A stretch of 64,000 nucleotides of DNA from IMGVR_UViG_3300007513_000001:1-64000; one strand, 5' to 3'. Counted from the stretch's first letter, positions 3,793-14,344 are shown. Program-made: numbers and translations. The notes: a model not told the origin generated them from the sequence alone.

Positions 3793-4313
3793 AAATTTTA
3801 CGAGAATATATAAGAGAGCTATTGAGTGAAGGTGTTGAGTTTCGCGAAGTTGATTCCCCGCTGAAATACAGTCGCTCTTCAAACGTCAAACGAATTGCGT
3901 ATTGCGATTCTGGTGTGACCGAGCTTCCTGGTAAACATGACACGTATTTTGATGAGATTGAAAGGTGGCGAAAGCGTACGAGTAGAGGTAAACTACTCAA
4001 AAAGCCAAAGCTTGAAGAAATCATCCCAGGCGTTAGCGACGCATGTATTATTGGGTTTTTAGACTACCACGTTCAGGGCCAGACCATAGATGGGAAAAAT
4101 ACCATGTGGTATATCGATTACATGAAAACTCGCACCGACTCTCGGGGCGCTGGCGTTGCTAGCAAGTTGGTTGACAACTTTTATGAAACCGTTGTAAAGC
4201 CGGGTGATCATGTCCATTTTGGTAAAATGATGCATCCGGGAATTGGCCACCTTAAAGATAAGATGGTAAAAAAATACCCGGATGTCAAAACAATCGGAGC
4301 GGTAAATTACTAA
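3789..4313 (+). CDS. GNAT acetyltransferase with MKILREYIRELLSE leader
   Basis: YIDYMKTRTDSRGAGVASKLV motif. Confidence 0.6.
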   Translation: MKILREYIRELLSEGVEFREVDSPLKYSRSSNVKRIAYCDSGVTELPGKHDTYFDEIERWRKRTSRGKLLKKPKLEEIIPGVSDACIIGFLDYHVQGQTIDGKNTMWYIDYMKTRTDSRGAGVASKLVDNFYETVVKPGDHVHFGKMMHPGIGHLKDKMVKKYPDVKTIGAVNY

Positions 4314-5182
4314 TGAACTTAGATGAATATAAGCAGCTATGCGGTAAAACGCCGCTTATCAAAATTAGCGATAAGATCTATGGAAAGCTAGAGACTTATA
4401 ATCCAACAGGTTCAGTTAAAGATCGAATGATTTCGTACGTTGTTGATCAAGCTATTTGCGGAGGTTTAATAACTGACGAAACGATTCTTTGCGAAGCGAC
4501 TAGCGGGAACACTGGCATTGCATTAAGCTCAGTGGCTGCTAACCTCGGATTAGAGTGCCGTATTTTTATGCCCGGCAATATGTCTATAGAGAGAAAACAA
4601 ATGATGTCAGCTTTTGGAGCGACATTTGTTGACGCTCCTGCTGATGATTTTGAGCGAGCAATTGAGATGAGAGATGAATTCATGTCAAAAAATCCCAATG
4701 CTTGGTCGCCAATGCAGTTTAGTAATCCAGCAAATGTGGAGTGCCACAAGCAGACTACAGCTTTAGAAATACTCAAGCAAGTTAACAGCATTGGATTAAA
4801 GTGGTCGGTATTCGTTCATGGTTCGGGGACTGGAGGGACTATTGAAGGCGTACGTCAGTTTTGCGCTGAAAATTTACCACGCACTAAAATAGTGATGGCT
4901 GTGCCCGCTGAGTCGCCCCACGGAATACAGGGAATCGGAGACGGTCGAGATTTCCTCGCTGATCCAGATGTTATGGACGATGTAGTCGTTATAAAAACTC
5001 AAGATGCGATCGAAAGAGCAAAGAATTTTGCTGAAGAAACTGGTTTATTTGTGGGCATAAGTTCCGGCGCGAATATTCTAGCTTCAGAAAGATTTGCTGC
5101 AGATAATGAAATTGCTGGCATAATTATAACGATGCTTTGCGATCGCGGAGAAAGATATTTATCTGTGTATGGTGAAAAATGA
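4313..5182 (+). CDS. cysK: cysteine synthase (PLP-dependent, CysK/CysM family)
   Basis: GKTPL, KLETYNPTGSVKDR, EATSGNTGIAL, GSGTGGT, GISSGAN. Confidence 0.9.
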   Translation: MNLDEYKQLCGKTPLIKISDKIYGKLETYNPTGSVKDRMISYVVDQAICGGLITDETILCEATSGNTGIALSSVAANLGLECRIFMPGNMSIERKQMMSAFGATFVDAPADDFERAIEMRDEFMSKNPNAWSPMQFSNPANVECHKQTTALEILKQVNSIGLKWSVFVHGSGTGGTIEGVRQFCAENLPRTKIVMAVPAESPHGIQGIGDGRDFLADPDVMDDVVVIKTQDAIERAKNFAEETGLFVGISSGANILASERFAADNEIAGIIITMLCDRGERYLSVYGEK

Positions 5183-6266: not shown

Positions 6267-6314
6267 ATCTTCTTGCTTAGTAATATAATCTATTTAACGA
6301 TGGAGATTAACTAC

Positions 6315-7325
6315 ATGAAGAAGACGATTTCTTTTGAAGACGTTCTATTAACACCTCAATATTCTGATATTATGTCGAGGAAAGAAATAGATCTCAGTGT
6401 TGCTTTAACTAAAGAGATTAATTTAAAAATTCCAATTATTTCTTCTCCGATGGACACAGTCACAGAAGACCAAATGGCTGTAGCTATGTCGAATCGTGGT
6501 GGACTTGGTATCATTCACCGATATAATTCTCCAAAAGAACAGCGAAAAGTGGTGGAAGATTCTCTAAAGGAAAGTTTTTACGTGGCGGCAGCAGTAGGTG
6601 TTACTGGCGATTATCTTGAAAGAGCACGAATGCTAGTAAAATCGGGCGTGTCAGTTCTTTGTTTGGACATTGCGCATGGCCACCATGCACTAATGAGGCA
6701 TGCTTTAAAAGTATTAAGAAACACGTTTGGTCAAGATATTCACTTGATGGCTGGCAATGTTGCGACGCTAGATGGATTTAATGATCTTTCAGACTGGGGC
6801 GCAGATTCAATCCGTGTAGGAATAGGGGGCGGCTCGATTTGTTCTACAAGAATTCAGACGGGCCACGGAGTTCCAACACTTCAATCTATTATTGACTGTT
6901 CTTATTCTGATCGTAATGCTCTTCTTATTGCCGATGGCGGAATTAGAAACTCTGGAGATATTGTTAAAGCTCTTGCAGCCGGAGCTGACGCGGTAATGAT
7001 TGGATCTCTTTTGGCTGGTTCAAATGAATCCCCGGGAGAAATGTTCCATAAAAACGGAGAAAGGTATAAGGTTTATCGTGGCATGGCTAGTAAAGAAGCA
7101 CAAATCCAGTGGCGCGGCCATTTTGCTTCTGTTGAGGGTGTATCCTCAGCAGTTCCGTGTAGAGGAAGCGCAGAAGATGTGTTAAGAGAGCTTGAAACTG
7201 GAATCCGCTCTGGTCTATCTTACACTGGAGCAAAAAATATTTTAGAGCTTCAAAGCAAGTCTACGTTTATAGAGCAAACATCAGCTGGACAGCTGGAAAG
7301 CTCAACTCATATTAACAAGAATTAA
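6315..7325 (+). CDS. guaB: IMP dehydrogenase / GMP reductase family, no CBS domains
   Basis: [40 protein letters not shown]. Confidence 0.88.
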
Positions 7326-7606: not shown

Positions 7607-7692
7607 GGCTGAGTGGTGGAATCGGTATACACAGGAGACTTAAAATCTCCCGGCCACAGGCCTTGCGGGTTCGAGTCCCGCCTCAGCTACCA
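7607..7692 (+). tRNA. tRNA-Leu(TAA)
   Basis: Cloverleaf, GGAGA-CTTAAAA-TCTCC anticodon arm, long variable arm, GTTCGA, CCA. Confidence 0.95.
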
Positions 7693-8128
7693 TTTCTTGG
7701 ATCATCAAGAATATACTGCGTTGTAGAATATAGTGCGCAGTATTTTAAGTTAAGCTAAGTGAACGAGAGATGAATCCTCTTTAGTAACAACTCTATTACA
7801 ATCTTTGAAATTTTATATTGAGGCCTTGGATTTAGCGGTCCGAGGAGCCGGTGGGGATACCGGTCGTAGTGACCAAAAAACTGACGGTGAGCGACGCATT
7901 GGTGGTCGCAAGAAGTCCGCAGGGAATGAGAGGTATGTACACCAACTGCATACTTCGTACCGTACGACGGATCCCCACCCCCTCTACCTTTTATGTGGGA
8001 GACACAGGCCAGAGTAGATGGTGGGTAAGTCTTACGAGCAGTAAGCCATCTCGTGGTTGCGTAAGCGTGGTCGAAGTACTGACTTTACAGGCTGTGTCTA
8101 GATAGAGAAGCTGGGAACTCTATCATAC
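7693..8128 (+). ncRNA. putative large structured ncRNA between tRNAs
   Basis: Nested helices e.g. 7850-7858/7971-7979, 8000-8007/8092-8099, 8016-8021/8046-8051, 8101-8107/8118-8124. Confidence 0.6.
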
Positions 8129-8204
8129 GGGACCGTAGCTCAGTTGGCAGAGCACCGGCCTTTTAAGCCGAGAGTCGTGGGTTCGAGCCCCACCGGTCCC
8201 ACCA
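8129..8204 (+). tRNA. tRNA-Lys(TTT)
   Basis: Cloverleaf, CTTTTAA loop, GTTCGA, CCA. Confidence 0.93.
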
Positions 8205-8211
8205 TTTTTTT

Positions 8212-8287
8212 GCCGAGATAGCTCAGCTGGCAGAGCTTCTGATTTGTAATCAGATGGTCGCAGGTTCGACTCCTGTTCTCGGCTCCA
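8212..8287 (+). tRNA. tRNA-Thr(TGT)
   Basis: Cloverleaf, TCTGA-TTTGTAA-TCAGA, GTTCGA, CCA. Confidence 0.95.
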
Positions 8288-8592: not shown

Positions 8593-9792
8593 ATGAAAAT
8601 TAAATCTATTATTTTAGGATTAGCTTTAGCAGGAAATGCATCAGCCCAAGAGCTTAGTTCTAGTGAAACATCTTATACCGGTGCGACTATTTTAGAGGGA
8701 GACTGGGATGTAACTTTCCAGGAAAGCGTTGCAATTGCTGACAGTGATGATACGTTTCCATATGCTTTCTTTGAAGGCAACACGCTCTATGTTGGTAATT
8801 CCGATATTTATGAGAATACAGTTGATGCCATCGTGGAGTTTTTCTGGTTCCAATCTTCGATTGATAGAGGTACAGATTTTTATGTTGCCGTCATCAAGAC
8901 ACGCGCCACTCCAGGACACGACTGTTACTATGCGCCCTGGGATTGGGCACGTGGAGCACAGTGCAAACTTTGGGCAGATGAGTGGTCAGATTGGGGTGAG
9001 TATCCGGTTCTAAGCGTCGAAGCTATGACTGACGTAGAGCGCGAGCAAGGCGCTTTTCGATGGGACTGGTCAGTACCATTTGAAAGTTATGGTATTGATG
9101 CTTATGGGCAAGTAACATTTCAAAGCATATATGGAATTGGTTCTACTTCTGAGGGTGCTGCCATGGCTCATGGCGAATACCAAATGAACGAAGATGGTGA
9201 AATGAAAGCCGAAGGAAGCGTGCAAGTAAAAGGATATCACTCCTCAGAATACAGTGTACAAACCCAATACGAAGTGACACTATATGAATGGGATGTTTTT
9301 GTAGACGGAAGAGCTGATTTGATGGCTTGGGATATGTATCTTAACCTTGGAGCTAGAGAAACGCAATCTGCTTATCACGAATATTTTTTAGCGGTGCAAG
9401 TAGAATCAGGCCAACCATTCACTATAGATCAATTTAACTTTATAAGTAATTTTGATACTGGTTGGTATGATCCATTTCGACACGAGCTTGGAATTTCATT
9501 AGAGGGGATGACAATTAGCCAGCCTTATTATGAGCCAGTGGCTGATACAGAAGATCCGGATTCTAATGAAGAAGATACGGGATCCTCCGCGGGATATCAA
9601 GACACCGGAGTAGAGCAAAACTCTGACAAAGATACGGCATCATCGTTTGAGTTCGGAGATAGCTCGCAAGAGCCGGGGAGCAAATCATCTAGTGGGTGTT
9701 CTTGTTCTACCAGCTCAACTAATAGAGCTGGTCTCTTATTTGGATTATTAGCTTTATTTTCTCGTAGAAAAGAAAATCATGTCGGGGCGTAG
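8593..9792 (+). CDS. secreted/surface protein with MYXO-CTERM-like C-terminal sorting signal
   Basis: Signal peptide; acidic linker; GCSCS...[13 protein letters not shown] tail. Confidence 0.7.
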
Positions 9793-9859
9793 CGCAGTCT
9801 GGCAGCGCATCTGCTTTGGGAGCAGAGGGTCGTAGGTTCGAATCCTGCCGCCCCGACCA
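9783..9859 (+). tRNA. tRNA-Pro(TGG)
   Basis: CGGGGCG/CGCCCCG acceptor, TCTGC-TTTGGGA-GCAGA, CCA. Confidence 0.95.
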
Positions 9860-9889: not shown

Positions 9890-10615
9890 ATGTTGATTTC
9901 TCCTAACCATAAATTTATCTTTTTTAAACCAATGAAATGCGCTGGTTCTTCAGTGGAGTTTGCGCTTTATCAGAATTGTGGTGAAGAAGCTTTGTGCACT
10001 GGTGGAATCGATGATGAAACAGACCGCGGCTTTGTTCAACGAAATAACGTTTTTTATGAAGGCGAAGAATTAAAATATAGATTTCATTCACACACCTGGC
10101 CAGCTTTATTTTATGAAAGAATTGCTGATCAGTCTATTTGGGAAGAATATAAGAAAATTACTATAGTAAGAAACCCATGGGACATGCTAGTGTCTTATTA
10201 TTGGCACTTTAGACATCAACGCGCAAACTGTAATCAATGGCTAGATATAAAAGAAGATGATTCTCCCGACCAGATAAAGTGGAAGTTCGAAAGTTTTTTG
10301 ACATTATTATCTAAAATGGACAGCATATTTCCAGGAGCAGTATACACTAATGATTCGCCAATAAATTACGCATCAACAATAAGCGAAGCCTTTATAGATG
10401 ATAATATAGATTTTTATTTATCGTTTGAAAACATTCAAGAAGACTATATCGAGCTTTGTGATAAACTCTCTATTCCAACTACAAAATTGCCACGATTCAA
10501 AACGCGATATAGAAAAATAGAGATGTCCTACAAAAACTATTACAACAAAACAACTCAAGAAGCAGTATACATGAGATTTCCTAAAACAATAGAAAAGTTC
10601 GGTTATAAGTTCTAA
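9890..10615 (+). CDS. sulfotransferase family 2 protein
   Basis: FIFFKPMKCAGSS and TIVRNPWDMLVSYY PAPS-binding motifs. Confidence 0.8.
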   Translation: MLISPNHKFIFFKPMKCAGSSVEFALYQNCGEEALCTGGIDDETDRGFVQRNNVFYEGEELKYRFHSHTWPALFYERIADQSIWEEYKKITIVRNPWDMLVSYYWHFRHQRANCNQWLDIKEDDSPDQIKWKFESFLTLLSKMDSIFPGAVYTNDSPINYASTISEAFIDDNIDFYLSFENIQEDYIELCDKLSIPTTKLPRFKTRYRKIEMSYKNYYNKTTQEAVYMRFPKTIEKFGYKF

Positions 10616-12968: not shown

Positions 12969-13405
12969 CAATGGGATTATTGATGGGGTGTTTTCAGAGC
13001 GCCGCACCAGAAGAGACGCTCCCTGGTTCGTGGAGCACTTGGGTAAATCAAGAGATTACAGGCTTGATCGATGTGAACACTCAGATCCACACGCAGCTCT
13101 GGCTTGAAGACGATGAAATTGTGGGTTGGCTCTATCATACCAAGGGAACGTGGGAGCTACAAGACCAATATATTACGCCTCCCTGTGACCCAGAGTGGGT
13201 TCACGGCACCTACCGTGAAGATACTTGGGGTTACCATATATCTTGCATGTACGTAGGTGATAAGTGTCTTTCTACTCGGGTGCACCCAGAGAGCGTAGAA
13301 GTAGACTTGGGAGATCTATCTTACGGAATGCTGGGCTGGATTAAGCTAGAAGATCGAATCGATCCTCCTGAAAATGGTAAAGAAGAATTCGAGTGCCAAA
13401 AATAA
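12944..13405 (+). CDS. putative lipoprotein
   Basis: LLMGC lipobox. Confidence 0.5.
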   Translation: MEGGDVVLAMGLLMGCFQSAAPEETLPGSWSTWVNQEITGLIDVNTQIHTQLWLEDDEIVGWLYHTKGTWELQDQYITPPCDPEWVHGTYREDTWGYHISCMYVGDKCLSTRVHPESVEVDLGDLSYGMLGWIKLEDRIDPPENGKEEFECQK

Positions 13406-13495: not shown

Positions 13496-14344
13496 ATGCC
13501 TCGCAAGTCAGCTAAACTTCGACTCTCTCAAGCTGAAGAGCTCTACAAGAGTTATAGCGATGAGGGAATGACCGAATCCAAAGGTGGTCGCTTCATTCGT
13601 GACATGATTGCTCGTCTCTCTCGAGGCCGTGGTCTCTCTAAGGGACAGCGAAACTGGCTTGATAGCCTCATCGAAGAAGGAGTCCCCCAGCCCAAGGGTG
13701 ACCAGGTGCTGCTCGCCAAAATCGACCAAGCGATTGAAACTCCGGGAATGGAGCGTCGACGCGACATCCTCTCCGATTTCCGTCGGAAGGTGTTCAATGG
13801 TTGGAATCTCTCTCCCAAGCAGACTCAGTGGCTCAGTTCGATGATTGCTGATGCTGAGACTCTCCGAATCGAAGGTCCATGGACTCCGAACGAAGAGCAG
13901 CTCCAAGACATGCGCGATATCGCCGCACTGTCTCGTGGATACAATTCGGTATACTGGTCTACGCATGGCGGCACTTGGCGAGCTGTGGAGAAGATTCGAG
14001 CTTACCTCGAGGTCCTGGATAAAGGAACCCTAGAAGCCCGGGTTGAATTGGCCCCCATTGCACTCGATGAGTGGTGCATCAACAAGGCGAAGAAGGCTAT
14101 GGCTGGCCGGATTCGCGAACTCCGCGAGAAGCCGTACGTTGTTATGGGCGACCTGGTCTGGACCCGGTATCGCGACCCAGGAGCGCTCTGGAATGAACCG
14201 TACCAGTGGTTCCGCGCTCCAGTCTGCGGAAGCCCTGAAATCTCTGAAAAGGGAGAGGTCGTCTATCCGGTGCTCAACCCAGTTCTCGGGCTCATTATGG
14301 TCACAAACCAACAGATTGCCAAGCGCAAGCCGAAAGGAGCATAA
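13496..14344 (+). CDS. hypothetical early protein with two LSxxQ helical modules
   Basis: GGAG RBS after promoter; GC-rich codons. Confidence 0.7.
   Translation: MPRKSAKLRLSQAEELYKSYSDEGMTESKGGRFIRDMIARLSRGRGLSKGQRNWLDSLIEEGVPQPKGDQVLLAKIDQAIETPGMERRRDILSDFRRKVFNGWNLSPKQTQWLSSMIADAETLRIEGPWTPNEEQLQDMRDIAALSRGYNSVYWSTHGGTWRAVEKIRAYLEVLDKGTLEARVELAPIALDEWCINKAKKAMAGRIRELREKPYVVMGDLVWTRYRDPGALWNEPYQWFRAPVCGSPEISEKGEVVYPVLNPVLGLIMVTNQQIAKRKPKGA

Follow-up and report, generated by a model that had tools for sequence, protein, structure and literature searches.

We analyzed the first 64 kb (64,000 nt, hereafter the window) of a 293,409-bp IMG/VR phage record with direct terminal repeats. Two adjacent paralogues of the T4-type major capsid protein Gp23 (176509-180120; open frames of 640 and 631 aa) place this phage among T4-like myoviruses. 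The genome encodes eight tRNAs, four of them near 274-280 kb, and, outside the window, the phage encodes its own tmRNA (72354-72761; tag ANNNYHFEADRLAA). The locus of interest is a 436-nt gap (7693-8128) between tRNA-Leu(UAA) (7607-7692; Rfam tRNA score of 56 bits) and tRNA-Lys(UUU) (8129-8204), the latter followed by tRNA-Thr(UGU) (8212-8287), all on the plus strand. Auxiliary metabolic genes flank the tRNA cluster, namely a PLP-dependent enzyme (4313-5182), an IMP-dehydrogenase/GMP-reductase family protein (6273-7325), and a sulfotransferase (9890-10615). In addition, a 399-aa secreted protein (8593-9792), whose stop overlaps the start of tRNA-Pro (9783-9859) by 10 nt, has a C-terminal Cys-rich, hydrophobic, basic tail that scores just under the threshold for the MYXO-CTERM sorting domain (17.7 against 20 bits), which may hint at the host lineage.

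Structured elements in the gap between tRNA-Leu and tRNA-Lys

A first-pass annotation proposed that the gap is filled by a new two-domain multibranch non-coding RNA of unidentified class, released by tRNA processing. Overall, our analysis supports this proposal, with several corrections. The helices listed in that annotation are present in the sequence, and the G+C content rises to 50-55% over 7830-8128, similar to the tRNAs, compared with 34-42% in the surrounding sequence. However, the first ~125 nt (7693-7821) are an AT-rich spacer and not part of the RNA. The spacer holds only a terminator-like 9-bp hairpin (7713-7743; ATACTGCG/CGCAGTAT, 7713/7736) followed by UUUU, which is kept through two wobble changes (7719 C>U and 7736 C>U) in a diverged metagenomic contig. 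The conserved, non-coding RNA spans 7822-8124 on the strand of the tRNAs, and comprises an optional 5' part and a widespread 3' core, although the two may not remain in one molecule.

The 5' part begins with a hairpin, H0 (7825-7844; CUUGGAUU/GGUCCGAG, loop UAGC), in which all eight pairs are paired in 100% of alignment cells and three show compensatory changes. It is followed by an accessory domain, domain 1 (7850-7979), closed by the helix GGTGGGGAT/ATCCCCACC (7850-7858/7971-7979). Domain 1 contains inner helices at 7860-7862/7968-7970 and 7864-7868/7963-7967, which are found in this subtype only, a GCGAC/GTCGC hairpin (7891-7895/7905-7909), and a second hairpin (7930-7939/7947-7956) that includes GAGGTATG/CATACTTC (7930/7949). 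The loops UUGGUG (7899-7904) and CACCAA (7940-7945) are complementary and invariant, and a loop-loop contact is therefore possible. In an alignment of 11 sequences, 94.9% of cells were paired, and 13 pairs showed double changes, compared with 4.1+-1.3 in shuffles and 0-2 when slid. Independent metagenome contigs carry the paired variants 7895C>U/7905G>A and 7939A>G/7947U>C. In contrast, a GGTC/GACC hairpin (7862/7871) listed in the first-pass annotation was not supported, as relatives change or delete the GACC.

A C- and U-rich linker (7980-7994; CCCUCUACCUUUUAU) separates domain 1 from the core, and is the breakpoint at which variants lose or swap domain 1. Exact-protein look-ups returned about 20 near-identical contigs, which were uninformative for covariation but revealed two such variants. 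The first contig, L012, shares the window only from ~7989 onward, has a promoter-like site, TGGTATAAT, about 50 nt upstream, and carries only a small GGGG/CCCC hairpin in place of domain 1 (L012 1200-1290). The second, L024, shares the window only up to ~7985 (L024 760-803). In a further metagenomic variant (X6; joint 7788>7991), 7789-7990 is replaced by 25 nt. Domain 1 is a presence/absence polymorphism among near-identical phages, and its edges carry the direct repeat TTTTAT (7811-7816 and 7989-7994).

The core (7995-8124) starts with GUGGG (7995-7999), followed by an 8-bp P1 (AGACACAG/CTGTGTCT; 8000-8007/8092-8099), which closes a four-way junction. Within the junction lie R-CCA-GAG (8008-8014), a variable P2 (AGATGG/CCATCT; 8016-8021/8046-8051), the 16-nt block CGUGGUUGCGUAAGCG (8052-8067), which contains UGGU (8054-8057) and a 3-bp mini-hairpin (8058-8067) capped by an invariant GUAA tetraloop (8061-8064), an optional P3 (8069-8072/8081-8084), and AGG (8089-8091). 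P1 is followed by P4 (GATAGAG/CTCTATC; 8101-8107/8118-8124) with the conserved loop AAGCUGGGAA (8108-8117). The CTTAC/GTAAG helix (8031/8041) proposed in the first-pass annotation was not supported, as relatives have CUUCC or CUUGC opposite AUAAG, and a 2-bp stem capped by a UNCG loop fits better (here a UACG-capped tip at 8031-8038). A 4-nt spacer (AUAC; 8125-8128) separates P4 from tRNA-Lys.

An RNA family of uncultured marine phages

To determine whether this RNA belongs to a known class, we searched the gap against Rfam 15 and found no non-tRNA hit inside 7693-8128, either at the gathering score or at E<=10 with permissive filters. This includes the models of GOLLD, ROOL, OLE, HEARO, raiA, RNase P RNA, and the group I intron; the same tool did detect two group I introns at a locus in a 280-kb contig carrying the motif (L027), indicating that it works in this setting. 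Fifteen homologous loci likewise had no match at the gathering score. ARAGORN, run with relaxed settings, found no tmRNA, intron-containing tRNA, or mitochondrial-type tRNA in the gap. Comparisons by eye with RNase P (CR-I/CR-V), hammerhead, HDV-like, twister, group II domain V, SRP, and Y RNA revealed no fitting motif. A blastn search against 50,697 GenBank phage records returned nothing apart from one chance 22-nt hit. Relatives reached through the adjacent GMP-reductase gene (67% identity) have a different layout and no such RNA, by BLAST or by the covariance model described below. Finally, a literature search for the core string found no paper, although an unnamed listing among the 8,495 IMG/VR candidates of PMC10690425 cannot be excluded.

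Homologs were nevertheless found in metagenomes. An index of public sequencing runs showed that about half of 7826-8128 is present in many unrelated marine metagenomes and in some metatranscriptomes, and contigs from four runs contained diverged copies of both halves, with the highest summed depth over 8056-8079. Using exact-pattern scans, we collected 118 distinct members of the core family, nearly all from marine metagenomes. A 24-nt junction string from domain 1 was found in no other viral contig, and a domain 1 pattern matched only three viral loci in two contigs, both already known to carry the core. To look for a host counterpart or an antisense target, we scanned 185,579 species genomes for a 17-nt core. 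This gave 29 hits in unrelated taxa, of which only three are true members, all on MAG contigs, and the rest are chance. Three motif-bearing contigs (L200, L205, and L216) are binned into MAGs labelled Legionellales, Flavobacteriales, and Dehalococcoidia; these are probably mis-binned phage contigs and should not be read as host assignments.

A covariance model, R1, built from 45 diverse members, matched 7992-8128 of the window at 144.1 bits (E about 1e-35; model positions 1-136). The window was one of the 45 sequences, and this match is thus partly by construction, but the model is specific, scoring members at 76-150 bits and chance hits at <=26 bits. All the signature elements of the family (GUGGG, P1, RCCAGAG, CGUGGUUGCGUAAGCG, AGG, and P4 with a UGGGA loop) are present at 7995-8124. 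The members are mostly 110-140 nt long. P2 ranges from 10 nt in L200 to about 110 nt in L205, whereas P3 is absent in eight members and carries a 59-nt insert in seven; a short P2 and a missing P3 would give a minimal natural variant of about 100 nt. The P4 loop follows the consensus A-AG[UC][UC]GGGA-AC. The 16-nt block is identical in every member. This constancy is partly built in, since two of the collecting patterns required the block; however, a looser scan required only its first six bases, CGUGGU, and every true member it returned carried the whole block.

The evidence for the fold rests on covariation, as thermodynamics alone is weak. The MFE z-score was -4.06 for 7850-7979, but only about -1.0 to -1.5 for 7990-8128, and -0.45 for 7693-7820. 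RNAalifold, applied to a structure-blind MAFFT alignment of 114 sequences, recovered P1, the mini-hairpin, P3, and P4, with compensatory changes in 18 of 23 pairs; one P4 pair, for example, splits GC:55 / AU:54. Among 45 diverse members, 87.8% of cells were paired under our structure, compared with 74.3+-0.7% in shuffles (0 of 500 as high) and 28-49% when slid. In a model-based alignment of 100 members, 95.7% of cells were paired against 80.0% in shuffles, 27 of 32 pairs showed compensatory changes, and 473 cells had double changes against 102+-15. A mutual-information scan for tertiary pairs or pseudoknots revealed only the secondary-structure pairs.

Domain 1 is far less widespread than the core. 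A homolog lies upstream of the core in about ten members, in two subtypes. In eight loci (L050, L089, L094, L117, L119, L156, L168, and L190), further conserved structured modules lie upstream of domain 1, behind TATAAT-type promoters, including a CCCAGGUCCGAAAGGAGG...UAUUGGUG...CUGGG unit and a GGUCGUCUGGAGCCGAAAGG unit, suggesting a modular RNA of more than 450 nt in some phages. Our scans also exposed a second conserved non-coding sequence (GTGGGAGGCTACTGCCAGAGTGTAGCAAA...GGCGGAAGGA...CGTGGTAGACGC) in L035, L037, L042, L049, L061, and L064, followed in some loci by a T-arm-like GGTTCGAATCC. It does not match R1, has no Rfam hit at the gathering score in the four loci tested (L035, L037, L061, and L064), and is possibly another unknown RNA.

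Genomic context and expression

Six large phage genomes each carry exactly one copy of the core. Gp23 is encoded in the genome studied here and in four of the five other large contigs (180-281 kb). All 107 tRNAs within 1.5 kb of a member lie on its strand, and 23 members abut a tRNA end. In 13 members a tRNA starts 4-12 nt after P4 (Lys-UUU in five, including the window, Met-CAU in five, Leu in two, and Asn in one), and in ten a tRNA ends 1-7 nt before GUGGG, nine of these being Arg-UCU. In 64 of 112 members, P4 is followed by a U-run, and 32 of 94 lie within 30 nt of the end of an upstream ORF. In L027, the group I introns (12982-13172 and 13592-13790) lie on both sides of the RNA; by our reading of the sequence, the upstream one interrupts the anticodon loop of a tRNA-Lys(UUU), and the downstream one lies beyond the next tRNA. 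No neighboring protein family recurs in more than 12 of 112 loci, and that family occurs at scattered positions.

We found no convincing promoter between the spacer hairpin and the RNA in the window. Promoter-like sites occur in a few members (L066, L029, L045, L026, and L012), but strict sigma-70 promoters are not enriched upstream of members (5 of 76 against 4 of 76 in controls). Contigs from two metatranscriptome runs match 7991-8126 and 7989-8103 without differences, and continue upstream into sequence unlike the window's domain 1. Their depth is about 2 and they could derive from DNA, so that they indicate presence in RNA libraries rather than prove a stable transcript.

Taken together, these results lead us to propose, with moderate confidence in its identity, fold, and biogenesis considered jointly, that 7822-8124 encodes a stable structured small RNA of a jumbo marine T4-like phage, whose 3' 130 nt are a single-copy member of a previously uncatalogued RNA family. 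From its position, we infer that the RNA is made on the same transcript as the flanking tRNAs, and that RNase P cleavage at tRNA-Lys sets its 3' end 4 nt after P4, whereas in most other members P4 plus a U-run would act as an intrinsic terminator. The 5' end would come from tRNA 3' processing, from cleavage in a U-rich linker, or, in a few members, from a promoter of its own. The genomic context fits the release by tRNA processing suggested in the first-pass annotation, but this release too is inferred from position alone.

Possible functions and comparison with known RNAs

The function of the RNA is unknown. We favor, with low confidence, action in trans by binding a conserved partner through the fixed single-stranded elements, although no partner protein could be linked to it. 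Three features suggest a mimic of the tRNA acceptor and elbow that engages tRNA-handling machinery or tRNA 3' ends themselves, a reading we regard as tentative. First, the 5' strand of P1 is followed by a purine and an invariant CCA, like an acceptor 3' strand with its discriminator, although this CCA is internal and followed by about 80 conserved nt. Second, the 3' strand of P1 is followed by UA in 62 of 113 members, compared with UA at positions 8-9 in 100 of 136 tRNAs of the same loci, and then by the P4 hairpin, whose loop fits the D-loop consensus, AG[UC][UC]GGGA, in 93 of 113. Third, the RCCA (8008-8011) can pair with the invariant UGGU, a pairing found in the free MFE of 78 of 112 members. 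Alternatively, its CC can pair with the GG of AGG, which is the free MFE in 27 of 112; the mean energy difference is 0.45 kcal/mol. These short invariant motifs give no covariation, and the Rfam tRNA model does not score the motif. A bolder possibility, which we consider unlikely, is that the UGGU:RCCA pairing forms a built-in T-box-like latch by which the RNA binds tRNA 3' ends, a tRNA-handling enzyme, or a host anti-phage tRNA nuclease, and so tunes or protects the tRNA pool during infection, or else that the RNA is a new ribozyme class. Either would give a function to the 50-year-old puzzle of orphan stable RNAs in T4-type tRNA clusters.

Other explanations appear less likely. The RNA could be a small self-cleaving or processing ribozyme that helps release neighboring tRNAs, as HDV-like ribozymes next to phage tRNAs may do. 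The sequence-constant core in a compact junction and the short distances to tRNA ends on either side are consistent with this possibility. However, no known ribozyme class matches at E<=10, the fold does not, by our reading, fit the HDV-like nested double pseudoknot, most members are not next to a tRNA, and many end in the terminator-like U-run. Equally doubtful is a cis-regulatory element, such as a riboswitch or attenuator, in which P4 plus the U-run decides read-through into downstream tRNAs or genes. Some members do sit 10-30 nt before an ORF with a ribosome-binding site, but downstream genes are not conserved, and P4 and its loop are kept where a tRNA follows after 4 nt with no U-run, as in the window. 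Moreover, the members close behind an upstream ORF lie directly behind a stop codon, at the 3' end of a unit, and the P4 loop is conserved like part of the fold rather than like an expression platform.

Slightly less probable still is a subunit of a larger RNA-only assembly like ROOL or GOLLD, in which the variable 5' modules and complementary loops would build multimers. The modular architecture, the invariant loops of domain 1, and the phage-borne position next to tRNAs (PMC12286853) agree with this idea, but there is no homology to ROOL or GOLLD, the core alone is only 110-140 nt in about 90% of members, and the loop pair can form within one molecule. A decayed remnant of tRNA genes, such as the junction of two tandem tRNAs, would account for the tRNA-like features and the location in tRNA arrays, but it is disfavored by the strong purifying selection on an invariant core, by compensatory changes across 100 diverged members, by the single copy in each genome, and by the occurrence of the motif far from any tRNA. 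A small protein, such as the 84-aa ORF at 7851-8105 named by a gene caller on some contigs, can be all but dismissed, as it has no Pfam match, substitutions in the helices are compensatory, P2 and P3 lengths fall in all classes mod 3, and, anchored on the 16-nt block, one frame is never open and the others are open in only 13 and 23 of 112 members.

The novelty lies at the level of family and fold, while the genomic niche is shared with known orphan RNAs. RNA classes with a sequence-constant core, a multi-helix junction supported by covariation, and over 100 diverged members are uncommon, and past examples have often turned out to be ribozymes, riboswitches, or RNP scaffolds. The present family probably bears on how big phages manage translation or tRNA-targeting host defenses. 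The UGGU:RCCA pairing would have the geometry with which the T-box antiterminator and RNase P L15 recognize the tRNA 3' end (UGGN or GGU pairing with NCCA). Here, however, both partners are in one molecule, no T-box or RNase P model matches, there is no specifier or Stem I equivalent, and the pairing is unproven because neither side varies. The ROOL and GOLLD RNAs are similarly phage- or prophage-borne, often beside tRNA genes, of unknown function, and composed of a conserved part plus variable modules (PMC12286853). The first-pass annotation had noted that GOLLD often sits among tRNAs, but the RNA described here is not related to GOLLD and is much smaller (a core of ~130 nt, and ~300 nt here, against ~580 and ~800 nt for ROOL and GOLLD), and it comes from marine T4-like phages rather than from rumen, lake, or Lactobacillales sources.

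By niche, the closest analogs also include the phage T4 species 1 and species 2 RNAs (rnaC and rnaD). No homology to them is detectable, as R1 finds nothing in the whole T4 genome at E<=1, and the predicted folds differ: rnaC ends in a T-arm-like hairpin and rnaD runs into a CCA (the annotated end plus one base), whereas this RNA has neither. The only shared string is GGUAAGUC, in rnaD and in the P2 loop; rnaD (5054-5172 of the T4 locus, minus strand) contains CCGGUAAGUCGUCGG, which resembles the P2 internal loop and tip (GGGUAAGUCUUACG, or CGGUAAGUCUUCCG in the member L041), and this may be chance. Nevertheless, rnaC and rnaD are small stable RNAs of unknown function encoded in the tRNA gene cluster of a T4-type phage, on the tRNA strand, and the phages studied here carry T4-type Gp23. 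Notably, rnaC and rnaD lie directly after tRNA-Arg(UCU) (AF158101), and nine members of the new family also start 1-6 nt after a tRNA-Arg(UCU). The family offers a comparative handle on why T4-type phages keep stable non-tRNA RNAs among their tRNA genes.
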